A stretch of DNA of 9,304 nucleotides from Prasinococcaceae sp. CCMP 1430 (lineage: Eukaryota; Plantae; Prasinodermophyta), in contig RQSC01000882.1 in NCBI GenBank assembly GCA_013416795.1, forward strand, positions 1 to 9,304. Direction: 5' to 3'. Of this stretch, positions 1 through 9,304 are shown piece after piece (position 1 is the stretch's first letter; each line of letters begins with the position of its first letter). A model generated the notes under the pieces. The model saw nothing but the letters and a program-made list of their open reading frames with translations, ran no database searches and had not been told where the DNA came from. The translations under genes and the position numbers were made by a program.

Positions 1-128
1 AGGATTATGTGCAGAGCATTTTCTACCTTAAGGCCTGTCAGAAGGCTATCATCTCGTTTTATGCTTGATTCCAAGCCATCTCTTCGTGTTTTGGGTGCCT
101 ATCTTCTTGCCTTGAAGTGATCACAAGG

Positions 129-324
129 AAACCCTAGTCCTGTTAGGGTTTGCACAAATTTGTTTTCCCATTCCAACAAGTGTTGCCCATCTTAGGGTTT
201 ATCAATCTTTTAGGGTTATAGGGCGTTTACTTTGTTCAAGGGCTGTGTTGAATGGATCTCATCGATCTTTCATTGATCTACAAGTGAGGGGCACCATATT
301 TTCCTCTCAAAACCCTAAACCCTA
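129..324. promoter_or_regulatory. Cluster of telo-box / plant telomere-like motifs (AAACCCTA) upstream of gag
   Basis: There are five exact AAACCCTA/TAGGGTTT octamers at 129-136, 144-151, 193-200, 310-317 and 317-324, the last two forming tandem AAACCCT AAACCCT A. TTTTAGGGTTA at 208-218 is a near match. The motifs are directly visible, but a regulatory function is inferred. Confidence 0.55.
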
Positions 325-447
325 GTTTTGGGCAAATTGAACAACATTGCAGCTTATTTCCCATCTCTCTGAGACTTCAACTATTATTGTGACCCTTTGT
401 CCCTGAACGGATCTATTGGTCGTCGAGTGATCGTGTTATCTTGGTCT

Positions 448-3400
448 ATGACCACATCAACTGACGGTGAAACCCATCCATCAGAGCACTCTCACCCCTC
501 TTCAAGTGGTGAGTTACCAACTGAAGGGTTTAACCCTGAAAGGCCTGTCTCCTCACCTCTTACTATTACAAACCCTGTTATTGACGTCAGTTATTCCCCT
601 GGTGACTCTGAGGCTTCTTCACCCTGTAGTCTTGCTAGACAGTCAACTGAGGGTTTAGAAGGGGGGGAAGGTCATCCATTCCTCCAACAACTCCCTTTTA
701 ACCAAAGCGGTGGAACGCGCTCTTTTTGGGAGAACAACTATTTTTCTGACAGTGACTCTGACGACGACATGAGTGCCATCAAGGAGACTCGGGACACTAA
801 GTCCACCCGCCTTTATTCTGGCAATGTGGATGATGGCATTACGCTTGTGCAACTGGGTAATCAGTACAAGCTACGCCTACAAGAGGTCACTGCCAAATGG
901 GCTCGACAGCAGCGAGGTGAAGTTTCCAAAGAACGAGAGGCGGAAGAGCTACGGTTGATGCTCACAGGGGAGGCTGCCATGCTCTTTGAAATGCATTATG
1001 ATGACCTCGTTGCTGACAGTGCGTCTGTATGGGACATTTTTGAGGCGAAAGCTCGCATTGTCTTTCCACCACCTGTTGGGCGTATTATTCAGGAGTTGCG
1101 ACGATTCAAGTTACAGCCGGGTGAACGTATTACTATCGCGCGACTCCGGATTAATAAGCTTTTGTCGCAGTTGGGTCCAAATGATAACATCCCTGAACAG
1201 GAGATTGCTACAAATATTTTGGCCCAACTTCCTGCTAACATCCGCGACAAAGTACTCATGGAGTTTGCTGGTAAGGATGGCAGCCTTGACAATCTCAATG
1301 TTGACCATATTGTGGAAGTGGCTGCAAAGTGGGAGCATGCTCTGGGTTATATTCATGGTTGGGCCACTGCCTCATCTTCATCAACCCCTGCTGCTCACAA
1401 TATTGATTTCACATCCTTGGGCAATCGCAACAATGTCAAATCTGAGAAGTATCAACGCAATCAACAAATGAGGGATTCTGGCTTGCGATGCTTCGGATGT
1501 GGAAAATTGGGTCATTCTCGCAGTCGATGTCCTCTTCATTCTGGAGATAAAATCTGTGATGCTTGCCACAAGAAGGGTCATATCCGCTCAGGCTGCTTTC
1601 AGACCAATCCTACCCTACGTCCCAAATCCACGGAACCTTCTGCCTTCCTATCATCTATGGGTCAAGATGAGGGCCATCTCGGAGACAACCTGTCTGGGCA
1701 TGAAGGTGAGGTGAAGGGTATTGGTAAGGTTCGCTGTCCCGGGTGTGGCAAACCGGGCCACACATCTGATCGTTGCTTTAAAATCCATCCCGAACTCCGT
1801 CCAGGACGTAAGGGTGGTTCCACTGCGCAGGGACTTGGCTCATCCCCTACTGTGAGTAACCTTGATGTGGAGGCCTTGAGGGCTCAGATTGCACAGCTTC
1901 AAGCCAGCGTGAATGATTTGACGCAGAGTGGGGTACGTGAGGCACGTGCTGCTGAATTACACTATGGCAGTTTGAATGCACAGCACGGTGGCCTTCAGTC
2001 TGAATCCTCTGCTAGCGTATCTCTTCCTACGTATGTTTTGGCTGGGCAGAGTGGTTCTTCATTTCCTGACAAGATTGAGCTTCATGAGCGGGTGCTGCGG
2101 TCTGCACGCAAACTTTCAGCGCCAAGTGGGCCGCAGCCACTTCCTGAGGCACCTGATCATGGTCGAGATGTAACCAAGATCACATCAAGGTTGCCTATGA
2201 GCTTTGTGCAATATTCTCCACCACGGGCTGATGCCTCCTCCCTACCCTCACCTCCTCATCATTCTGCCAACCCGGTGCCCCGACTTTCTCGTTTCAAAGA
2301 GACTTCTGCACCCGAGTCTAAGGATATTACTGCTTCTGCTAGTGGTGCCCATAAGGTTGGGCTCACTCTTACCCCCACTGATGTGCGTGCTGTGGCTGAG
2401 GCATGTGCCAATCTTCTGCACAGCACTGGTGACCCTTATCGAAGAGGAGATCGCAGGGATGTCACGCCTGGGGTCATGTATGTTGATAATTCTCAGAAGG
2501 TGCTGGAGGTCAATGGACACTATCCAACCAAGGCCATGCTTGATTCAGGGGCATCCGCTGTTTTCATCAGCGCACCTTTTGCTGAGTTCATTGGGCTGAA
2601 GTCAGAGAATTTCCAAGATGTTTATGCCACATTGAATCAGGCAAGTGGCACCTCTCGCTCCATTGAGAAAATCACCAAGGATCCCATCAACATCACCTTC
2701 AAGCCAGGCACGGGAGACACATGTCTCATTCAATGTCGCTGCATTCTTACGCATGCCTTCGCTTATGATCTACTAATTGGCGGTACCGTTCTCTATCCGG
2801 CTGGGTTTGTCCTGGATTATTGGGGTGAGAAGGCGGAGTACCGTCCAGATTGGCGATTGCTTGATGGTCGACGGGCTTCCTTGCCTGTTACCATGGTTGA
2901 AGGCACTTCGGTGAGTCGGGATTCTGGGAAGGCTCTAACCTTAGAGCTCAACTTCCGCCTTATGGAGCCTATGGTTGCTGCAGCGCATGTTTCAATTCTT
3001 GAGCCTTCGCTGGATGCAGCTTGTTTCAAAGCTGAGGACTGGGAGTGGCAGATCCAAGCTGAAGCTGAGATTGGCACCCTCTCTGCTGCTCTCATTGGTG
3101 CCGTCGGTCAAGTGGTGGGCACCAAGAGCCCTCCTCCTCTTCATCCAGCCCATTGGTCATGTAGCCGAGGCCCACTTGATATGCAGCGTGCTCTCCTCAC
3201 GCACCCTCTCCACCTACCTCTTCCACCTAATACTATCAACCGCACAGTGGACACGCGAGTTCTTGAGGGCTGGCCTCCTCCGCAGGCCTCCACAACATCA
3301 AAAGGACTTGTCGTTTTGGATTTATTTGGTGGATTGGGTACTGGTGTGGAAGCCCTGTTGGCAACTGGCTATCATATCCACAAGTATATATACTGTGATA

Positions 3401-6400
3401 AGGATCCTCTGGCTCAGCATGCTATCGTTCACCGTCTGCTCACTCTTTCGTCTGCATATCCTGCCCAACTTCCACCTACCTCCTTTGCAAGCTGTCTGAA
3501 GCTGCTACCGCAGGATGTCAATCTTGTGACAAGGGATCATCTTGCCACACTTGGGCCTGTGGATATCTTATTCGCAGGCTGGCCATGCCAAGGGGTCAGT
3601 AGAGCTGGCAAGGGTCTTGGGCTTGATGATCCGCGTACTGCTTGCTTCCACATCCTGGTGGATGTTCTGGGTCAACTTCAGAGTATGGATCACAATCGTC
3701 ATATGGCATATGTTCTCGAGAATGTGCCTTGTGACACAGACCACCGTGTGGGTGTTCGAAGGGCTAAGGATGAGTTCTTCCTGCGTTTGGGTCCACCATT
3801 TGCCATGGATGCTGCTGGTGTTGGCTCTTACGCTCATCGTGCTCGGTGGTATTGGACCAATCTGGCGTCCCATCACTCGCTCAACCTGGCTTATAGTCTT
3901 CGACCACCACCTGGACGGGCTGCAAAGGATGTGCTTGATCCTGGCCGTGCCCCGCAAATCTGTCAAATGCCTGATCAACCACCTATGGCTTCCATCAATC
4001 GCGTCGGGGAGGAAATTAAAATCTTTCCTACGCTTCTTTCTTTTCCTGAGAGTCATGCGTTCAACCATGGTGGTCCAGGTATGGTGCGAGACTTGTCCAC
4101 GGGTGCCTTGTCACCGCCCACAGTCACAGAACGTGAACGCATGCTTGGTCTTTGGCCACACTCCACTGCTGCTCCCTCGCTGACTCATCATGATCGGATC
4201 ACTTTAATGGGGCAATGCATCGATCTGCACGCTCTCACTTGGCTTCTTGGAGCTGCTCAACAATTTCAACGCACCCTACACTTGCTGCTTTCCCCTGCGA
4301 GTCATGCCTCTTATGTGCAGCAGCCGGGTGTGCCTACCATGGCAGACCACCTGGCTGGGGGGGGTCAAGCTGATATTGTCACAAAGCAGCAAGCACGAGA
4401 GGTTGCCCCTCAGACCACCAAGGACACAGAGCAATGCTTTCAATGGGATATCAATCCCGAGCTTACGTCTGAGCAACGTGCAAAGGTTGTCGCCCTGATG
4501 GAGAGGCACAGGGATGCTTTTGCGTTCAGTTTAGGGGAACTTGGGCGCTACAATGGCGGGTATTTTGAGATTGACACGGGGGATGCCAAGCCAATTTTTT
4601 GTCGCAAGCAACGTATGGCTAAGGCAGAGGAGGATCTCATGCAAGAGCAAATTGAAAAGTTGCTGAAAGCGGGACTTATTCGAGAATCTTCAGGACCTTG
4701 GGCATCTCAAACTACTATGGCTTTGAAAAAGGACCCTGAAGGCAATTGGACTTTGCGAAGAATGGCGGGCGTTTATGTTCCTATCAACAGTGTGACACGT
4801 GCTGAAGTTTATCATGGCCGTACCCCAGATGAAATTTTTGATGGGCTTGGAGACGATTCGTGGTTCTCCTTGATTGACCTACGCAGTGGTTTCAACCAAA
4901 TTCCGCTCAGGGAGGAGGACTGCTGCAAAACTGCTTTCTGGGGACGCGATCGGCTTTATGAGTGGGTGGTGATGCCTTTTGGCCTAAAGAACTCTGCAGT
5001 ACGCTTTCAACGTATCATGGATCAACATGTCTCACGCCATGATGTGGATGTGTATATTGATGACGTTTTTCCTCACACGATCTCTTTTGACACACATCTC
5101 GAGACACTTGACTGGGTCTTCAATCAGTTCAAGCGCATCAATATGAAGGGTCATCCTGAGAAGTTGCGCCTATGCTATCGTAAGATTGATGCCTTGGGGC
5201 ACACTGTTCTTCCGCATGGGTTGTCTGTTCAAGAGGGGAGAGTTAAGGCTATTGCGTTAATGCCTGAGCCACGTGATGTACCTCAACTGCGAATCATCCT
5301 GGGAGTCGGGAATTACTATCGTCGGTTTGTGGTCAACTACTCTGCTCTCATGGCCCCTCTCACTCTCCTGTTGCGCAAAGAACAACGTTGGGTCTGGCAT
5401 GCTGAACAGCAGGAGGCCTTTCGAAGCATGAAGCTTGCTCTCTGCAATGCACCTGTCCTCTTACGCCCCAACCATCGCCATCCCTTCATCCTTTACACTG
5501 ACTGGTGTGCCAAGGGACTGGGGGGGGTACTCACGCAGGTGGATGTTGAGGGTCTGGAACGTCCTGTGGCTTTCAGCTCGAGGTCTTGCTCACCAACGGA
5601 GGCACTGCTGAGCTCTTACGAGGGTGAAGCATTGTCCGCTGTTTGGAATATCCAGCATTTCCGTTACTTTCTTTTCGGGGTTCACTTCACTTTGGTGACC
5701 GACCATCAGCCACTACAATGGCTCATGAACAACCAAAAGTTGACAGGAAAGCTTGCGCGTTGGCGCCTTATCTTGGCTGAGTATGATTTTAAGGTGGTTC
5801 ATCGAGCAGGGAGCCTGAATCAGGTGGCAGATGCATGCTCGCGCCTGCCTTTACCTTCTTCCAAAGATGACACGGGTGTGGGGCTGGACTCTGATCAGTC
5901 AGCGCTTGACGCATCTCTCCATCCCGCGGTCTTTCTTAGCCACCTCCCTGCAGTTGTTGATCCACCTAATGATGACAATCCCATGCCTCAGAGCCCAATG
6001 GATATTTGGGAGGATGCACCTACTCTTCATTTTCTTCGTGAGGGTGTGCATCTCCCCCATTTGTTACCAAAGGAGAGGGATCGCGTTATGCATCGGGCCA
6101 AGAATTTCCGGTGGGTTGATGGCGGCTTATTACGCGAGGTTCCGGGGAGCCCTCTCTCACCAGGGACGGGTGTTCGCGTGGTTCCTCGTCCTGCTGAACG
6201 TCCTCTCGTCATCCAAGAGATGCACGAACAGATGGGTCACTTGGGTCAAAAGCGTACTCTTGATCTTGTCTCTGCGCAGTTCTGGTGGTGTGGTATGGCG
6301 GGTGATGTAACTGCACAGGTCCGTCAATGTGGACAATGCGATCGCGTGAAAAACTCTTTTAATGCTACCGACTCTACTCTTCACCCCCTACCCATCATGG

Positions 6401-7485
6401 GACTATGCTACCGTTGGTCTGTTGATCTCCTAGGGCCATTGCCAACCACCACTCAGGGCTCATATCGCTTTGTTATGGTTATGATCGAGCATTTCAGCAA
6501 ATGGGTGGAATTGGCTCCTCTTCAGTCCAAGGACGCGGATCTCACTGCCTCTATCTTTCTTGACCGTGTCTTGGCGCGCTTTGGAGCACCTGGAGAAGTT
6601 CTCACTGACCAAGGTACTGAATGGCAAGGATCCTTTGCTGCTCTTCTGCGGCAGGCAAAAGTGGATCATCGTGAAACTAGTCGCAATCATCCGCAAGCAA
6701 ATGGGCTTGCAGAGCGATTGGTTCAGACTGTCAAGAAGACCCTGCGTGCGCATTGTTTGCAACGTGACCGCCACGAATGGCACAAGTGGCTCCCATGGCT
6801 TGCATTGGGACTTCGTTGTAGTGGTCAATCTGCACTTGGGGGTCTTTCTCCATATTTCCTCCTCTATGGTCGTCATCCCTCTCTCCCGTCTTCTCTTCAT
6901 CGTTATGTTCAACATCCTCTGGATCTAGATGACGTGAAGCATGTTCACAAGGCTATCGAGCAGCGTGCTCACCTTTTTCAGCAACTCATGCCTATGGCTA
7001 TGCAGAACTTGGCTATTGCGCAGCAACGTGATACCCTACGATATGCCATGACGCGTAGTGGTCATTTTATTGCAAAGAGGCATCAGTTCAAAGAAGGTGA
7101 CTATGTTTATCTCAAGCGGCAAACGAAGGATACTTTGGACACTGCATGTTCAAAAGTGATTCTTCGTGTCAACAAAGTATTACCAATGGGTGTCTTGGAG
7201 CTTATTGGAAGGTGCGGTAGCACTACGCGTGATAATGTTACCAATTGCGCACCTTGCCATTTGCCCGACATTGATGGGCGCATTGATCCATCGTTGAAGC
7301 GGGTTACGATTCACACAGCATGCGAAGTTTGCAAGTCTGAGGCGGACGAAGCCACCATGCTCATTTGTGATGGTTGCAACTCGGGCTGGCACATGACATG
7401 CTTGCAACCGGTGCTCACTGAGGTTCCTGATGGGGATTGGTTTTGCCCGCGCTGCAGAGAGTCTCTGGTTGGTACGGAAATTTGA
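448..7485 (+). CDS. Gag-Pol polyprotein (2345 aa from the first ATG): Gag, 3x CCHC, protease, DNMT3-like methyltransferase, RT, RNase H, integrase, PHD
   Basis: The frame has no stop from 397 to TGA at 7483-7485. The track starts at TTG 397, a non-AUG codon. The first in-frame ATG is 448 (MTTSTDG) and the next is 769 (MSAIKET), so the true start is uncertain. Domain motifs are listed in the features below. Confidence 0.93.
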   Translation: MTTSTDGETHPSEHSHPSSSGELPTEGFNPERPVSSPLTITNPVIDVSYSPGDSEASSPCSLARQSTEGLEGGEGHPFLQQLPFNQSGGTRSFWENNYFSDSDSDDDMSAIKETRDTKSTRLYSGNVDDGITLVQLGNQYKLRLQEVTAKWARQQRGEVSKEREAEELRLMLTGEAAMLFEMHYDDLVADSASVWDIFEAKARIVFPPPVGRIIQELRRFKLQPGERITIARLRINKLLSQLGPNDNIPEQEIATNILAQLPANIRDKVLMEFAGKDGSLDNLNVDHIVEVAAKWEHALGYIHGWATASSSSTPAAHNIDFTSLGNRNNVKSEKYQRNQQMRDSGLRCFGCGKLGHSRSRCPLHSGDKICDACHKKGHIRSGCFQTNPTLRPKSTEPSAFLSSMGQDEGHLGDNLSGHEGEVKGIGKVRCPGCGKPGHTSDRCFKIHPELRPGRKGGSTAQGLGSSPTVSNLDVEALRAQIAQLQASVNDLTQSGVREARAAELHYGSLNAQHGGLQSESSASVSLPTYVLAGQSGSSFPDKIELHERVLRSARKLSAPSGPQPLPEAPDHGRDVTKITSRLPMSFVQYSPPRADASSLPSPPHHSANPVPRLSRFKETSAPESKDITASASGAHKVGLTLTPTDVRAVAEACANLLHSTGDPYRRGDRRDVTPGVMYVDNSQKVLEVNGHYPTKAMLDSGASAVFISAPFAEFIGLKSENFQDVYATLNQASGTSRSIEKITKDPINITFKPGTGDTCLIQCRCILTHAFAYDLLIGGTVLYPAGFVLDYWGEKAEYRPDWRLLDGRRASLPVTMVEGTSVSRDSGKALTLELNFRLMEPMVAAAHVSILEPSLDAACFKAEDWEWQIQAEAEIGTLSAALIGAVGQVVGTKSPPPLHPAHWSCSRGPLDMQRALLTHPLHLPLPPNTINRTVDTRVLEGWPPPQASTTSKGLVVLDLFGGLGTGVEALLATGYHIHKYIYCDKDPLAQHAIVHRLLTLSSAYPAQLPPTSFASCLKLLPQDVNLVTRDHLATLGPVDILFAGWPCQGVSRAGKGLGLDDPRTACFHILVDVLGQLQSMDHNRHMAYVLENVPCDTDHRVGVRRAKDEFFLRLGPPFAMDAAGVGSYAHRARWYWTNLASHHSLNLAYSLRPPPGRAAKDVLDPGRAPQICQMPDQPPMASINRVGEEIKIFPTLLSFPESHAFNHGGPGMVRDLSTGALSPPTVTERERMLGLWPHSTAAPSLTHHDRITLMGQCIDLHALTWLLGAAQQFQRTLHLLLSPASHASYVQQPGVPTMADHLAGGGQADIVTKQQAREVAPQTTKDTEQCFQWDINPELTSEQRAKVVALMERHRDAFAFSLGELGRYNGGYFEIDTGDAKPIFCRKQRMAKAEEDLMQEQIEKLLKAGLIRESSGPWASQTTMALKKDPEGNWTLRRMAGVYVPINSVTRAEVYHGRTPDEIFDGLGDDSWFSLIDLRSGFNQIPLREEDCCKTAFWGRDRLYEWVVMPFGLKNSAVRFQRIMDQHVSRHDVDVYIDDVFPHTISFDTHLETLDWVFNQFKRINMKGHPEKLRLCYRKIDALGHTVLPHGLSVQEGRVKAIALMPEPRDVPQLRIILGVGNYYRRFVVNYSALMAPLTLLLRKEQRWVWHAEQQEAFRSMKLALCNAPVLLRPNHRHPFILYTDWCAKGLGGVLTQVDVEGLERPVAFSSRSCSPTEALLSSYEGEALSAVWNIQHFRYFLFGVHFTLVTDHQPLQWLMNNQKLTGKLARWRLILAEYDFKVVHRAGSLNQVADACSRLPLPSSKDDTGVGLDSDQSALDASLHPAVFLSHLPAVVDPPNDDNPMPQSPMDIWEDAPTLHFLREGVHLPHLLPKERDRVMHRAKNFRWVDGGLLREVPGSPLSPGTGVRVVPRPAERPLVIQEMHEQMGHLGQKRTLDLVSAQFWWCGMAGDVTAQVRQCGQCDRVKNSFNATDSTLHPLPIMGLCYRWSVDLLGPLPTTTQGSYRFVMVMIEHFSKWVELAPLQSKDADLTASIFLDRVLARFGAPGEVLTDQGTEWQGSFAALLRQAKVDHRETSRNHPQANGLAERLVQTVKKTLRAHCLQRDRHEWHKWLPWLALGLRCSGQSALGGLSPYFLLYGRHPSLPSSLHRYVQHPLDLDDVKHVHKAIEQRAHLFQQLMPMAMQNLAIAQQRDTLRYAMTRSGHFIAKRHQFKEGDYVYLKRQTKDTLDTACSKVILRVNKVLPMGVLELIGRCGSTTRDNVTNCAPCHLPDIDGRIDPSLKRVTIHTACEVCKSEADEATMLICDGCNSGWHMTCLQPVLTEVPDGDWFCPRCRESLVGTEI
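805..1335 (+). other. Gag capsid-like (retrotransposon gag) domain
   Basis: LTGEAAMLF (961-987), SVWDIFEAKARIVF (1024-1065) and IIQELRRFKLQPGE (to 1125) match the L-x-G-x-A, W-x2-F-x7-F and Q-x2-E pattern of retrotransposon Gag. The domain lies just before the zinc knuckles. Confidence 0.65.
1489..1776 (+). other. Three CX2CX4HX4C nucleocapsid zinc knuckles
   Basis: CFGCGKLGHSRSRC (1489-1530), CDACHKKGHIRSGC (1555-1596) and CPGCGKPGHTSDRC (1735-1776) all have exact CCHC spacing. Confidence 0.95.
2500..2820 (+). other. Retropepsin-type aspartic protease domain
   Basis: AMLDSGASAVFIS has the catalytic DSG at 2542-2550. The downstream DLLIG (2767-2781) matches the conserved C-terminal hydrophobic-G motif. 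Confidence 0.9.
3307..4260 (+). other. C5 cytosine DNA methyltransferase domain, DNMT3-like
   Basis: The ordered C5-MTase motifs are I DLFGGLG (3319-3339), II YCD (D 3397), III QDV (D 3514), IV DILFAGWPCQ (catalytic Cys 3586-3588), V GLDDPR, VI YVLENV (ENV 3718-3726), VIII AHRARWYWTN (R 3838, R 3844), IX TERERMLGL (ERER 4129-4140) and X RITLMGQCID (G 4210). AHRARWYWTNL and VTRDHLATLGPVD closely parallel DNMT3A AHRARYFWGNL and VTQKHIQEWGPFD (comparison from memory). Confidence 0.93.
4441..5220 (+). other. Reverse transcriptase domain (Ty3/Gypsy type)
   Basis: GLIRESSGPWAS, IDLRSGFNQI (catalytic D 4876), KTAF, MPFGLKNS (4972-), YIDD (5053-5064) and LGH (5194-5202). Confidence 0.97.
5482..5850 (+). 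other. RNase H domain (Ty3/Gypsy type)
   Basis: LYTDW (D 5500), YEGE (E 5626), VTDHQPL (D 5701) and ADACSR (D 5830) supply all four acidic catalytic positions. Confidence 0.95.
5998..7266 (+). other. Integrase: HHCC zinc-binding domain, DDE core and SH3-like C-terminal region
   Basis: H 6223, H 6238, C 6328 and C 6337 form the HHCC. The core is WSVDLLGP (D 6424), LTDQG (D 6607) and HPQANGLAER (E 6712), with 34 residues between the second D and the E. FKEGDYVYLK at 7087 starts the C-terminal region, which has no canonical GPY/F. Confidence 0.95.
7321..7455 (+). other. PHD finger (C4HC3) at the polyprotein C-terminus
   Basis: CEVCKSEADEATMLICDGCNSGWHMTCLQPVLTEVPDGDWFCPRC has C 7321, C 7330, C 7366, C 7375, H 7390, C 7399, C 7444 and C 7453, plus the typical P-x-G-x-W-x-C. 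Confidence 0.96.
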
Positions 7486-7561
7486 TCTATATTGGTGTTT
7501 GCGCACTCCTCCTAACTAGTGGTATATTATGCAAAGCCTGTTCGCTGGCTCCATCCTTTGC

Positions 7562-7569
7562 AGGGGGGG
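7562..7569 (+). other. Putative polypurine tract (plus-strand primer)
   Basis: AGGGGGGG lies 77 bp downstream of the stop codon and is followed directly by TG (7570-7571), the usual PPT/3' LTR junction. The tract is short. Confidence 0.6.
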
Positions 7570-7855
7570 TGCAAGGAGTTGTGATGCGTACCATTTCACA
7601 CACTATCTTTACGCCACACTTTAATCATATTTTTCGTGATGCTGCGTGGTGGTGCATGTGGATCGCAAAAGTGGTGTCCACAGGACAAGCAGCTGGCTAA
7701 ACCTCAACCTCGAGTGGTGTCCGACATAGTTGAAGGCACGAGCTATGGAGTTGCGACAGCTGTCATGCTCGTGCGTCTCCGCATCGGTATTTTGTCGTGT
7801 GTACTGATCAATCATGGCTCCATGATGATTATGCATAGCTTCTAAATTAATTGCA
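7570..7855 (+). repeat. Candidate 3' LTR (start fairly likely, end tentative)
   Basis: It starts TGCAA directly after the PPT. The complementary TTGCA at 7851-7855 would give a 286-bp TG...CA LTR. No second copy exists in the window, so the LTR could be much longer. Confidence 0.3.
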
Positions 7856-8161
7856 ATGCATTATTACTACTATTTGCGTCCCTTTCCGTTGTTACGTGAG
7901 TCAATTCATGTTTGAGGGCGCTTTGCTATTTAAATTTCGTCACCTGTGACAGCCTATGTTGGATTTGTGGTGAATGCTTGTGCTTCCACGAGCAAACGCG
8001 CCTCACATGTAGCGTTACAACTATGTTTGTCACGTTCGCGTACTCCTCGAGCGCCCCCGACGCGCGAGTTAAGTGCTCGTGGCATTTTCCTAAGGCGTGC
8101 GACCCTAAACATGTGCCCAATGTCACCCAGGGCGCAATTTTGGGCCTGTCGCGCCTTAACG

Positions 8162-8235
8162 CGCGACTTTTCGTCGAAATCGCGATTTTCGCGCGATTTT
8201 CGCTATTTTCGCGATTTTCGCGCTGAAACGCGCGA
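8162..8235. repeat. CpG-dense short tandem array, unit CGCGATTTT
   Basis: Units lie at 8181-8189, 8192-8200, 8201-8209 (CGCTATTTT) and 8210-8218, with a variant CGCGACTTTT at 8162-8171. There are 17 CpG in 74 bp and an embedded palindrome AAATCGCGATTT at 8177-8188. Degenerate copies occur at 8261-8268 and 8271-8279. Confidence 0.85.
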
Positions 8236-8403
8236 CGTAGCGTCGAAGTTACCTACTTAGCGCGATTTGGGCGATTTTTGGGTTTTTGGAGTCGTTAGGA
8301 GTGCGACTGCGCGCTTATCGCGCCCGTAGCTATAGTTCTGATCTTTATACACTGTCGTAGCTATGTGGACGCGTTATAGGTGCCCACCCAGTCCCGACTG
8401 GGT

Positions 8404-8917
8404 TAGATTTTTGCGTGACAGCGGCGGCGGCGCATGGATTTCTGAGATCCATGGCGGATTAGTCATGCCGCCATGAAACATGGTTTCTTGGCGCTCAGGT
8501 AGCCATTTTGCATCCCGTTTGGCTTGACAGATCGCTTCTCCTTGCCATGCGGACCTCATCTGGACTTACTGCAGTGAAAATGGTGGAGTCTTCTTCATTA
8601 TCCTGTGGGTTCAAGGTCGTGTGCTGCAAAACATGGTGAGTCCAATGCATGTCCGTGAGCTACATCCGGTTCTAGCGATCAATATGAAAGGCTATATGCT
8701 TCCAAAATCAACCATCTGACAGGGATAAACTGCTGAACCATGCTGGAACAACCCACGTTTGCATCTTGAGCTCACACATCGCTGTCACAGCAAATTCTCC
8801 ACGAACTCATGAAACCTCATTGTGGGCATAACACGCATAACCATTAGCATTATTTTGTGCTTCTATGGCTTGCTCTATGCCCGGCCTGATGGCCATCCCC
8901 TTTCACGCAAAAATCTA
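8404..8917. repeat. Perfect 15-bp inverted repeat pair (possible MITE-like element with TA target duplication)
   Basis: TAGATTTTTGCGTGA (8404-8418) is the exact reverse complement of TCACGCAAAAATCTA (8903-8917). It can be read as TA + 13-bp TIR ... TIR + TA. The repeat is directly visible, but the MITE call is inferred. Confidence 0.45.
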
Positions 8918-9304
8918 TCTTCTTTCACACAAGATTGTGAGGGTTACAACGATCTCATCATGATGCAACGTGAGTTGTTTTAAACCATGTTATGTATTTG
9001 GAATCCATTGAGGGTTTGTTGAACCCCATTTCTTCATGAGACCCATGGTATAAATTTGTGCACTGTTGACAACTTCCCAACTGAATGAAGTGTCATATGG
9101 GAGACATTTTGTTCAAAACGTTCATGATGTCGCTTTGAGTCACAATTTTCTTTGCTACGATTCAATCTCGTGATCCATCATTCTTGTTTAGGCCTGGTGT
9201 TGGCCATCCTTGTTTTGTTTTGCCTGTCTGAAGGCAACTCTCTTGGTCACGAGGTTTGGTGATACGTGTTGAGGCCGTCTAGGCCATCCTTTGATCTTCG
9301 TGCG

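Follow-up and report, generated by a model that had tools for sequence, protein, structure and literature searches.

KnitGypsy-Dnmt3 was first described in the charophyte Klebsormidium nitens (de Mendoza et al. 2018; PMC5890265). It is a Gypsy-type element with an unpermuted DNMT3-like domain in its Pol polyprotein. Its repeats have a DIRS-like arrangement, its DNMT domains are under purifying selection, and its K. nitens copies bear methylation in the CHG and CHH contexts, as silenced elements typically do (PMC5890265). In the only published test of its activity, made in yeast, the K. nitens domain produced no detectable methylation; human DNMT3B was likewise negative, and the authors drew no conclusion from the result (PMC5890265). 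Motif X was poorly conserved among the K. nitens members (supplement of PMC5890265). SymbioDIRS-Dnmt3 also has a DNMT3-like domain in the Pol of a retroelement, and its domains methylated CG de novo in yeast (PMC5890265).

The analysis concluded that the window (the whole stretch of DNA analysed, 9,304 nucleotides) represents the internal coding part of an LTR retrotransposon that is apparently intact, is of the Ty3/Gypsy type (Metaviridae) and belongs to the Gypsy-DNMT3 lineage. The class is already known from streptophyte algae, and the window copy is a divergent member of it. SymbioDIRS-Dnmt3 and DIRS-like elements differ in belonging to another class (tyrosine recombinase or DIRS type) without the Gypsy RNase H, integrase and PHD finger. 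Like the chromoviruses, the window has a reader of histone tails at the integrase C terminus of a Ty3/Gypsy backbone, but the chromovirus reader is a chromodomain and that of the window is a PHD finger; chromoviruses also lack a methyltransferase.

Architecture of the Gag-Pol ORF

A single plus-strand ORF at 397-7485, coordinates that include the stop codon (2362 codons; first ATG at 448), contains no internal stops and encodes the whole polyprotein in the order Gag(CCHC x3)-PR-DNMT-RT-RNaseH-IN-PHD. The features of the window are as follows.

1..396, + strand: upstream untranslated stretch, which may be leader or flank
397..7485, + strand: Gag-Pol ORF (ORF call; Pfam domain content)
1489-1530, 1555-1596 and 1735-1776, + strand: three Gag CCHC zinc knuckles (pattern C-x2-C-x4-H-x4-C)
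2506..2694, + strand: retropepsin-type aspartic protease (Pfam gag-asp_proteas; Asp_protease_2)
2695..3306, + strand: PR-DNMT linker, ~200 aa, without a recognised domain
3307..4290, + strand: DNMT3-like C5 cytosine methyltransferase domain (PF00145, PDB matches, AF2 fold)
3325-3339, + strand: DNMT motif I (FxGxG)
3580-3594, + strand: DNMT motif IV PCQ (Cys codon 3586-3588)
3718-3726, + strand: DNMT motif VI ENV
3835-3861, + strand: DNMT motif VIII RxR
4024-4224, + strand: DNMT motif IX/X region
4291..4848, + strand: DNMT-RT linker and N-terminal RT part outside the Pfam match, collinear with the K. nitens protein
4849..5208, + strand: reverse transcriptase core (Pfam RVT_1, ORF aa 1485-1604, 65.1 bits)
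5395..5784, + strand: Ty3/Gypsy-type RNase H (Pfam RT_RNaseH, aa 1667-1796, 103.2 bits)
6190..6690, + strand: integrase (H2C2 zinc domain 6190-6354; DDE catalytic core 6412-6690)
7321..7455, + strand: C-terminal PHD finger (Pfam PHD, aa 2309-2353, 42.2 bits)
7486..9304, + strand: untranslated region after the ORF, which may comprise 3' UTR and part of a 3' LTR

The retroelement assignments are supported by the following data. The protease matched gag-asp_proteas at ORF aa 704-766 with 29.3 bits (cut-off, 28.2), and motif searches placed its active-site DSGA at 2542-2553 and the RT motif YIDD at 5053-5064. The RNase H region also matched RT_RNaseH_2 (94.1 bits), while the integrase matched Integrase_H2C2 (aa 1932-1986, 56.1 bits) and rve (aa 2006-2098, 39.3 bits). 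All of the retroelement catalytic motifs (DSG, YIDD, HHCC and rve) are intact. At the position equivalent to the zinc knuckles, the related protein P0001 gave a Pfam zf-CCHC match.

The Pfam domain order and the uninterrupted ORF bear out the preliminary description, in which a C5-MTase was placed in frame inside Gag-Pol between PR and RT. The linkers, estimated there at about 150 and 60 aa, are longer. The PR-DNMT linker of ~200 aa matched no Pfam family at E<=0.1 and gave no more than a loose alignment to the K. nitens protein. The DNMT-RT linker measures ~100-190 aa, depending on the RT start that is chosen; no Pfam family was matched within 4261-4848, and the RVT_1 match of the K. nitens protein in this region begins at profile position 5.

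No LTR pair, PBS or PPT was definable within the window. The upstream stretch could not be assigned to an LTR because it has no similarity to the downstream region. It contains a cluster of six AACCCTA units (plant telomere-unit, or telobox-like) at 130-324, where 0.64 were expected and six or more occurred in 0 of 200 shuffles. The downstream region held no ORF with a family match and no repeat in common with the 5' end of the window; TRF reported a 9-nt tandem array at 8180-8222. In the relative L003, terminal direct repeats of 94% identity start ~0.8 kb past the last pol ORF. The CpG observed/expected ratio was 0.62 in the ORF and ~1.0 in the 3' flank.

The nearest solved structures to the PHD finger are those of KMT2C/D, CHD4, BAZ2A/B, WSTF, KDM5A/B, PHF21A, ATXR5, AIRE and UHRF1, mostly H3-tail readers, and unmodified H3K4 is the ligand of most of these PHD families. 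The same PHD finger was present in most relatives of both layouts described below. A reader at the integrase C terminus can guide integration by chromatin, as is established for chromodomains.

The methyltransferase domain

Its sequence and modelled fold identify the domain as a complete C5-MTase of the DNMT3 type, with unpermuted motifs and no catalytic residue missing. A search with PF00145, suggested as a check in the preliminary description, gave 24.3 bits for the whole ORF (aa 1039-1111) and 28.2 bits when only 3307-4260 was scored, both above the curated cut-off of 22 bits. Motif I, PCQ with its Cys at 3586, ENV and RxR were located where they had first been reported; these and the motif IX/X region are all intact and in unpermuted order. 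The start of the originally proposed span, 3307-4260, was retained, but its end was moved, the folded domain reaching ~4290 in the AF2 model (pLDDT 90.4, pTM 0.90). In a comparison of 183 family members, none lacked the catalytic Cys or the ENV Glu (100% retention); retention was 94% for the ENV Asn, 98-99% for the RxR arginines and just 41% for the motif IV Pro.

The assignment to DNMT3 rather than to DNMT1 or CMT, also made earlier, was upheld by three kinds of comparison. With phmmer against the PDB, DNMT3A/B/C matched at E ~1e-7, DNMT2 at 1e-3 and M.HhaI at 0.04. The family profile matched DNMT3A at 7e-25, DNMT3C and 3B at ~1e-21 to 1e-22, DRM at 4e-15 to 4e-11, M.HhaI at 5e-9 and DNMT2 at 6e-6, and no DNMT1 or CMT was matched at E<=0.01. 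Motifs I, IV-VIII and IX-X were spanned by three collinear segments in this profile search. With Foldseek against the PDB, the best 50 listed matches were DNMT3A/B/C only (E ~1e-17), with target-normalised TM scores of 0.80-0.84 against their catalytic-domain chains. The profile and fold matches to DNMT3 are much stronger than chance would produce.

The catalytic domains of mammalian DNMT3A, 3B and 3C are therefore the best match in sequence, profile and fold, and they have the motif order, catalytic Cys, ENV and RxR in common with the window domain. Identity to the solved DNMT3s is only ~20%, however, and the window domain is ~60 residues longer and has an insertion, specific to its family, that separates motifs VIII and IX. 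It also lacks PWWP and ADD; the sole reader is the PHD finger, ~1000 residues away at the integrase end.

Relatives of the element

About 215 relatives were retrieved and were found to have two layouts, PR-DNMT-RT and RT-RNaseH-DNMT-IN-PHD. The named examples of the first, which is that of the window, are all streptophyte algae (Klebsormidium, Closterium), and those of the second are all chlorophytes (Haematococcus lacustris, Scenedesmus sp. PABB004, Chlamydomonas eustigma and Pyramimonas sp.). The window probably comes from a streptophyte host other than Klebsormidium or Closterium. An exhaustive search, counting a single representative for each 50%-identity cluster, gave 1940 proteins with E<=1e-3, 212 of them with E<=1e-30. 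DNMT-bearing retrotransposons had initially been regarded as known but rare; they are known, but these numbers do not support rarity.

From PR to IN, the window aligns collinearly with KFL_009030040 of K. nitens (35% identity over 1639 columns; ~35% for the DNMT). This protein has the same PR-DNMT-RT-RNaseH-IN order, with a PHD downstream in the same locus. The window ORF has no interruption. The copy analysed from K. nitens, by contrast, is cut by the scaffold end and is interrupted at least four times, by two or more in-frame stops and two or more frame changes. The DNMT junctions of this layout recur in K. nitens, in several Closterium strains and in metagenomes.

The chlorophyte and metagenomic RT-RNaseH-DNMT-IN-PHD elements have a homologous DNMT (35-41% identity, E down to 1e-65), and their RT, RNase H, integrase and C-terminal PHD are likewise homologous to those of the window. 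Their DNMT lies between RNase H and integrase instead of between PR and RT and constitutes a distinct subfamily by profile scoring. A literature search turned up no description of these chlorophyte and metagenomic elements. The DNMTs of the DIRS-like proteins retrieved here (RVT_1, RNase_H/RVT_3, some with Dam) were 30-35% identical to that of the window.

Function of the methyltransferase

Taken as a whole, the data are best explained by an element of the Gypsy-DNMT3 lineage that inherited its DNMT and is proposed to methylate itself, and we consider this explanation to be probable. A different benefit would follow if the DNMT methylated new insertions so that the element silenced itself, limiting its copy number and the harm to its host; we regard this self-restraint as unlikely but worth weighing. 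The biochemistry would be the same as in the main explanation. The CHG and CHH methylation on KnitGypsy-Dnmt3 copies fits self-restraint (PMC5890265), but host pathways can account for both marks. The lower CpG ratio of the ORF could reflect long-term methylation of coding sequence, though such depletion needs the host background for its interpretation.

Less probable again is that the fold has been kept without the domain being a de novo DNA methyltransferase in vivo. It could then serve as a scaffold or regulatory module without activity of its own, in the way that DNMT3L serves DNMT3A, or its substrate could be RNA or the RNA-DNA hybrid. The poor retention of the motif IV Pro, the weak motif X of the K. 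nitens members and the negative yeast result would all agree with this, but since human DNMT3B was negative in the same test (PMC5890265), that result was deemed uninformative. Opposed to it are the intact catalytic motifs of the window and its best structural matches, the active DNMT3A/B/C. The invariance of the catalytic Cys and ENV Glu across 183 diverse members would also be unexpected of an inert module.

Origin of the DNMT

The preliminary description proposed that the element itself had captured a host silencing enzyme. This was not supported, as the window DNMT is 35-43% identical to other retroelement DNMTs (E ~1e-60 to 1e-74) and only ~20% identical to the solved DNMT3s. In the neighbour-joining tree of RT-RNase H, the window grouped with two metagenomic PR-DNMT-RT elements, L003 ORF2 and P0199, at 96% bootstrap, and K. 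nitens joined these at 58%; the suggested comparison with an RT tree thus placed the window beside other PR-DNMT-RT elements. Its RT-RNase H is 47-49% identical to the two metagenomic elements, closer than to K. nitens. In the DNMT tree, also built by neighbour joining only and without cellular algal or plant DNMT3, 15 of 15 PR-DNMT-RT sequences fell in one clade free of RT-RH-DNMT sequences, at a support of 26%. The two layouts were separated for every member tested by leave-one-out profile scoring, and the window scored 9-18 bits better with the PR-DNMT-RT profile, a small preference.

Since the DNMT is nearer to retroelement DNMTs and the RT-RNase H groups as above, the capture was deduced to be ancestral to the lineage. 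From these sequence relationships we infer a single ancient capture of the DNMT, made by a Gypsy lineage of green plants that carried a PHD; the DNMT would later have reached two different polyprotein positions, and the window would have inherited it. An independent capture of a DNMT3 from the element's own host, apart from the Klebsormidium family and with a convergent layout, had also been raised. Retroelements are reported to have taken up DNMTs repeatedly (PMC5890265), the window DNMT is a deep branch with at most ~43-46% identity to any relative found, and its profile preference is slight. Nevertheless, no evidence for such a capture was obtained, and it is very improbable given the shared location of the DNMT between PR and RT, the shared C-terminal PHD, the K. 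nitens collinearity, the 96% grouping, and E values for retroelement DNMTs far below the 1e-7 of solved cellular DNMT3s.

A chimeric assembly, a DNMT gene nested in a Gypsy element or a retroelement-derived host gene is hardly credible: only a single copy was seen and the window has no LTRs, but 2362 codons run without a stop or frame change, the same junctions occur in independent K. nitens, Closterium and metagenome sequences, and all retroelement catalytic motifs are intact, whereas domesticated genes usually retain one domain only.

Proposed mechanism

For an inherited DNMT that methylates the element itself, the following steps are proposed. PR would cut the polyprotein to leave the DNMT free or still joined to RT, and the DNMT, with SAM, would methylate cytosines de novo in the element's own reverse-transcribed DNA or in new insertions and the DNA around them. 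Through its PHD finger, the integrase would read the histone H3 tail, probably with unmodified H3K4, and may thereby tether integration to chromatin in a particular state. As hypothesised by de Mendoza et al. 2018 (PMC5890265), the element would in this way determine its own methylation, such as gene-body-like CG methylation, and would not leave it to be decided by host silencing.

Domain organization of the polyprotein

A single open reading frame (ORF) was found on the forward strand at 397-7485, comprising 2362 codons with the first ATG at 448 and no internal stops. The domains assigned to it by Pfam and the zinc knuckles located by motif pattern are as follows.

1489-1776, + strand: three CCHC zinc knuckles, Gag part (motif pattern)
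ORF aa 704-766, + strand: retropepsin-type protease (PR)
ORF aa 1039-1111, + strand: C-5 cytosine DNA methylase, PF00145 (DNMT)
ORF aa 1485-1604, + strand: RVT_1 (RT)
ORF aa 1667-1796, + strand: Gypsy-type RNase H
ORF aa 1932-1986, + strand: integrase (IN) H2C2 zinc domain
ORF aa 2006-2098, + strand: integrase rve core
ORF aa 2309-2353 (window 7321-7455), + strand: PHD finger

The signatures DSGA, YIDD and HHCC were all present in the ORF. The Pol order PR-RT-RNaseH-IN of Ty3/Gypsy elements (Metaviridae) was recovered by Pfam with the DNMT inserted after PR, and the Gypsy-type RNase H, the H2C2/DDE integrase and the CCHC knuckles of Gag are those of Ty3/Gypsy elements. No capsid family was detected by Pfam in the Gag, and neither the PR-DNMT nor the DNMT-RT linker gave a Pfam family match; both linkers are somewhat longer than proposed in the preliminary description. 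At the C terminus of the integrase no Chromo hit was obtained by Pfam in the window ORF. Assignment to the chromoviruses was rejected since a PHD finger replaces the chromodomain. Judged from its sequence, the polyprotein apparently represents a divergent, coding-intact copy of the element.

Assignment of the methyltransferase domain

The preliminary description, made from the sequence alone, had placed an intact DNMT3-like domain at 3307-4260. Its motifs I, PCQ, ENV and RxR were all located where they had been claimed to be.

3325-3339, + strand: motif I
3580-3594, + strand: motif IV PCQ, with the Cys codon at 3586-3588
3718-3726, + strand: motif VI ENV
3835-3861, + strand: motif VIII RxR
4024-4224, + strand: motif IX/X region

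The order I, IV, VI, VIII, IX/X along the ORF is canonical, without circular permutation. The PF00145 profile proposed as a check scored 24.3 bits on the whole ORF and 28.2 bits on 3307-4260 alone, against a curated cut-off of 22. The domain itself was thus upheld; its 3' limit was not, as the fold runs to about 4290 in the AlphaFold2 model. Across 183 diverse family members the catalytic Cys and the Glu of ENV were conserved in 100%, the Asn of ENV in 94%, and the Arg pair of RxR in 98 to 99%. The window's DNMT has every catalytic feature and is a predicted C5 methyltransferase.

The likeness to DNMT3 was deduced from three comparisons, each made with solved structures only. In a sequence search against all of these, DNMT3A, 3B and 3C ranked highest, with E about 1e-7, far ahead of DNMT2 (1e-3) and M.HhaI (0.04). 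The ranking was repeated with a profile built from alignment A1, which holds the window's DNMT domain and 31 relatives, and no DNMT1 or CMT was matched by this profile at E<=0.01 among solved structures.

Table. Matches of the A1 profile to solved enzymes
DNMT3A: E 7e-25
DNMT3C, DNMT3B: E about 1e-21 to 1e-22
Plant DRM enzymes: E 4e-15 to 4e-11
M.HhaI: E 5e-9
DNMT2: E 6e-6

DNMT3A aligned to this profile in three collinear pieces, one with motif I, one with motifs IV-VIII and one with IX-X, so the permutation seen in DRM is absent. The AlphaFold2 model computed on A1 had a mean pLDDT of 90.4 and a pTM of 0.90. When this model was compared to the PDB with Foldseek, the best 50 matches listed were all DNMT3A/B/C chains (E about 1e-17 to 1e-14), with target-normalised TM-scores of 0.80 to 0.84 for DNMT3 catalytic-domain chains. 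Sequence, profile and predicted fold, all ranked against solved structures only, thus agree with the earlier annotation as DNMT3-like, and the domain is predicted to be closest to DNMT3 with DRM next. No cellular DNMT3 was among the matches listed in the protein searches.

Family size and divergence of the window

An exhaustive HMMER search with the DNMT domain over 1.84 billion representative proteins gave 1940 matches at E<=1e-3, of which 212 were at E<=1e-30. The top identities to the window's DNMT in this search were about 41% for full-length matches and 46% for one fragment. With this number of matches and a best identity of 41 to 46%, the family can be called large, and the window branches deeply within it and has no close relative on record. 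An exact look-up of the ORF product from the first ATG gave no identical protein in the protein collection, scans of JGI metagenome contigs and of IMG/VR contigs gave no match to the DNA, and a literature search on the sample accessions of the nearest relatives was likewise empty. The best match in a word-indexed search was 43% identical, and at this distance from the nearest relative synonymous sites are saturated. With hundreds of protein clusters, the family appears to be much larger than the literature found would suggest.

Two positions of the DNMT

Domain order was typed in 215 retrieved proteins, many of them partial, using the window's domains as queries at E<1e-3. The order RT-RNaseH-DNMT-IN(-PHD) was assigned to about 116 of the 215 (P0002, P0003, P0005, P0010, P0023, P0038 and about 110 more), and in another 25 the DNMT was directly followed by integrase. 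The order of the window, (Gag)-PR-DNMT(-RT-RNaseH-IN), was assigned to 18. Both layouts were confirmed by Pfam on example proteins. Elements of the two layouts are about equally related to the window in their RT, RNase H, integrase and PHD. The backbone was therefore deduced to be one Gypsy lineage with a C-terminal PHD finger, in which the DNMT occupies either of two positions.

All trees were built by neighbour joining (NJ) with Kimura distances. The tree computed from 183 DNMT domains had one clade of 28, with a bootstrap of only 26%, that took in all 15 sequences of the window's layout and none of the other layout. The window stood beside DIRS-like DNMTs in this tree, a position treated as unreliable and possibly a long-branch effect. 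This low-support tree was replaced by profile scoring and by a tree of RT-RNase H. In leave-one-out scoring, every PR-DNMT-RT member gained 24 to 125 bits with the profile of its own layout, and every tested member of the other layout gained 60 to 190 bits with its own. For the window itself the PR-DNMT-RT profile was better by only 9 to 18 bits, a small margin as expected for a basal member.

Organism names were attached to only about 20 of the relatives. All 11 named proteins of the RT-RNaseH-DNMT-IN-PHD layout were from chlorophytes (Haematococcus lacustris, Scenedesmus sp. PABB004, Chlamydomonas eustigma and Pyramimonas sp.), and all named examples of the PR-DNMT-RT layout were from Klebsormidium or Closterium. 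The NJ trees and profile scores, read with this named minority, thus suggest that the layouts are split between chlorophyte and streptophyte hosts.

In two relatives with the window's layout, L003 and L001, the gene caller placed consecutive same-frame ORFs (1692-8171 and 8193-11492 in L003; 768-5972 and 6126-6650 in L001). The first ORF of each encodes gag-PR-DNMT and the second RT-RNaseH-IN-PHD. Over the whole span exactly one in-frame stop was found in each of L003 and L001, and none in the window or in L002, another contig of a relative. The stop may be a Gag/Pol boundary of the read-through type located 3' of the DNMT; if this is true, the DNMT would fall on the abundantly made part.

Relation to the element of Klebsormidium nitens

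KnitGypsy-Dnmt3, described from K. nitens, comprises DNMT3-related, intron-less DNMTs inside a Gypsy Pol polyprotein, with Ka/Ks <0.2 (de Mendoza et al. 2018, PMC5890265). Its repeats are depicted there in an arrangement like that of DIRS elements. In the published tree a divergent DNMT3-related clade holds the retroelement DNMTs of K. nitens, and the authors' reading was of acquisition in the K. nitens lineage (PMC5890265).

The window likewise has a DNMT3-like domain within a Gypsy polyprotein ORF. The K. nitens protein KFL_009030040 was retrieved by a profile query whose first sequence was longer; no Klebsormidium protein was among the matches listed in word-indexed protein searches with other queries. 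In KFL_009030040 Pfam finds DNMT, RT, RNase H and IN in this order, and a PHD finger lies downstream at the same locus in a separate ORF piece. BLASTP of the window against this protein was collinear from protease to integrase, with 569 of 1639 columns identical (35%, E=0). The K. nitens copy is truncated at the scaffold end and carries at least 4 interruptions, whereas the window's ORF is uninterrupted.

The NJ tree of 86 RT-RNase H sequences joined the window with the second ORF of L003 and with P0199, a metagenomic PR-DNMT-RT protein, at 96% bootstrap, and K. nitens joined these at 58%. Cluster look-ups supplied names for further proteins that fall with the group of the window's layout, namely another from K. 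nitens and those of Closterium strains NIES-53, -54, -65 and -68; this layout is shared by all four Closterium proteins with a decidable domain order. From the RT-RNase H grouping and the named relatives, the window probably represents a branch of the streptophyte-type Gypsy-DNMT3 lineage that lies apart from the subgroups of Klebsormidium and Closterium, and its host is probably a streptophyte. The preliminary description had recognized the class as a known one, and the window does fall inside the Gypsy-DNMT3 kind already described: it is a divergent new copy of a known class, not a new kind of system.

Element ends and untranslated regions

Only some 0.4 kb of the window precedes the ORF, and 1.8 kb follows its stop. 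No repeat shared by 1-447 and 7486-9304 was found above shuffled controls by repeat search and local alignment on both strands. The window does not contain both ends of the element. In L003, a metagenomic contig of 12.5 kb, direct repeats of 94% identity were present at both ends, as expected for LTRs cut by the contig end.

No Rfam family was matched in the window. Just 5' of the ORF, a stretch of 195 nt (130-324) contains six copies of AACCCTA, the plant-type telomere repeat unit (telobox-like), distributed over both strands, among them a perfect run of two units at 310-324. The expectation for the whole window is 0.64 copies, and none of 200 shuffles reached six. This cluster could serve the retrotransposon as a promoter or leader element, or it could belong to the host flank. 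On the 3' side, a CG-rich tandem array of period 9 and 4.6 copies was observed at 8180-8222. The CpG observed/expected ratio was 1.21 at 8001-9000, versus 0.62 in the ORF and 0.24 at 1-396, and the array and the CpG-rich stretch may be part of a 3' LTR. CpG depletion as a sign of methylation was considered and set aside, since its reading depends on the CpG background of the host.

The PHD finger and DIRS-like relatives

In the window, K. nitens and L003 (aa 1045-1089 of the second ORF) the integrase is followed by a PHD finger, as it is in the majority of elements with the other layout; the equivalent in the relative L005 is at 4772-5269. The DNMT and the PHD finger therefore travel together across the family. 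The solved PHD fingers nearest to that of the window are those of KMT2C/D, CHD4, BAZ2A/B, WSTF, KDM5A/B, PHF21A, ATXR5, AIRE and UHRF1, most of which read the unmodified H3 tail. In a contig of Haematococcus lacustris (L004, 3539-6923, minus strand), a Gypsy-type gene with Chromo and PHD hits after the integrase adjoins a DNMT-bearing element, which suggests that reader domains are exchanged among such elements.

Six further proteins (P0045, P0047, P0056, P0058, P0065 and P0185) carry DNMT3-like domains 30 to 35% identical to that of the window. DIRS-like features were detected by Pfam in four of the six: divergent RVT_1 in P0045, P0047 and P0065, RNase_H/RVT_3 in P0045, and a weak, sub-threshold match to the Dam adenine methyltransferase in P0047 and P0058. 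For P0056 and P0185 Pfam gave the DNMT only. DNMT3 domains may thus be common to retroelements of the Gypsy and DIRS classes.

Proposed function and implications

It is proposed that the protease would free a DNMT-containing product after translation, and that the freed DNMT would then act as a de novo cytosine methylase on copies that are reverse-transcribed or freshly integrated, or on chromatin close by. Integration would be tethered to a chromatin state by the PHD finger that ends the integrase. The benefit, according to a published hypothesis, would be control by the element over its own methylation state, in place of marking by host silencing. A self-limiting role of the DNMT is an alternative that would involve the same biochemistry. 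De novo activity has been tested in yeast, where domains of SymbioDIRS-Dnmt3 gave CG methylation and the K. nitens domain gave no signal, a result that the authors considered inconclusive as human DNMT3B was also negative (PMC5890265).

The family-level results, namely its size, the two layouts and the PHD partner, appear to be of more interest than the single copy, as far as NJ trees, profile scores and a few named sequences indicate. Later papers name retroelement DNMT3s only "in streptophytes and dinoflagellates". Fusions of PHD fingers and chromodomains with transposable elements are known in general. Elements from Closterium, chlorophyte elements with the order RT-RNaseH-DNMT-IN-PHD and the constant association of a DNMT with a PHD finger were not described in any paper found in our literature search.

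One broader reading is put forward tentatively, and we regard it as rather doubtful. The window would come from a streptophyte lineage without reported DNMT-retrotransposons, either another charophyte class or a land plant, and would possibly be a young, still-coding copy. For the family as a whole, the data agree with a single ancient capture of a DNMT3 by a PHD-bearing Gypsy lineage spanning chlorophytes and streptophytes, with the DNMT position differing between the groups. If true, this would supersede the published view, in which the capture is confined to the lineage of Klebsormidium.

The presence in a retrotransposon of the class of enzyme that hosts use to silence such elements is a striking takeover of epigenetic machinery by a genomic parasite. 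To the streptophyte Gypsy-DNMT3 lineage the window adds an uninterrupted and very divergent copy. If the host turns out to be a land plant, or an alga of a new class, or if the family goes back to one ancient capture, the assumed age and spread of this strategy would change.
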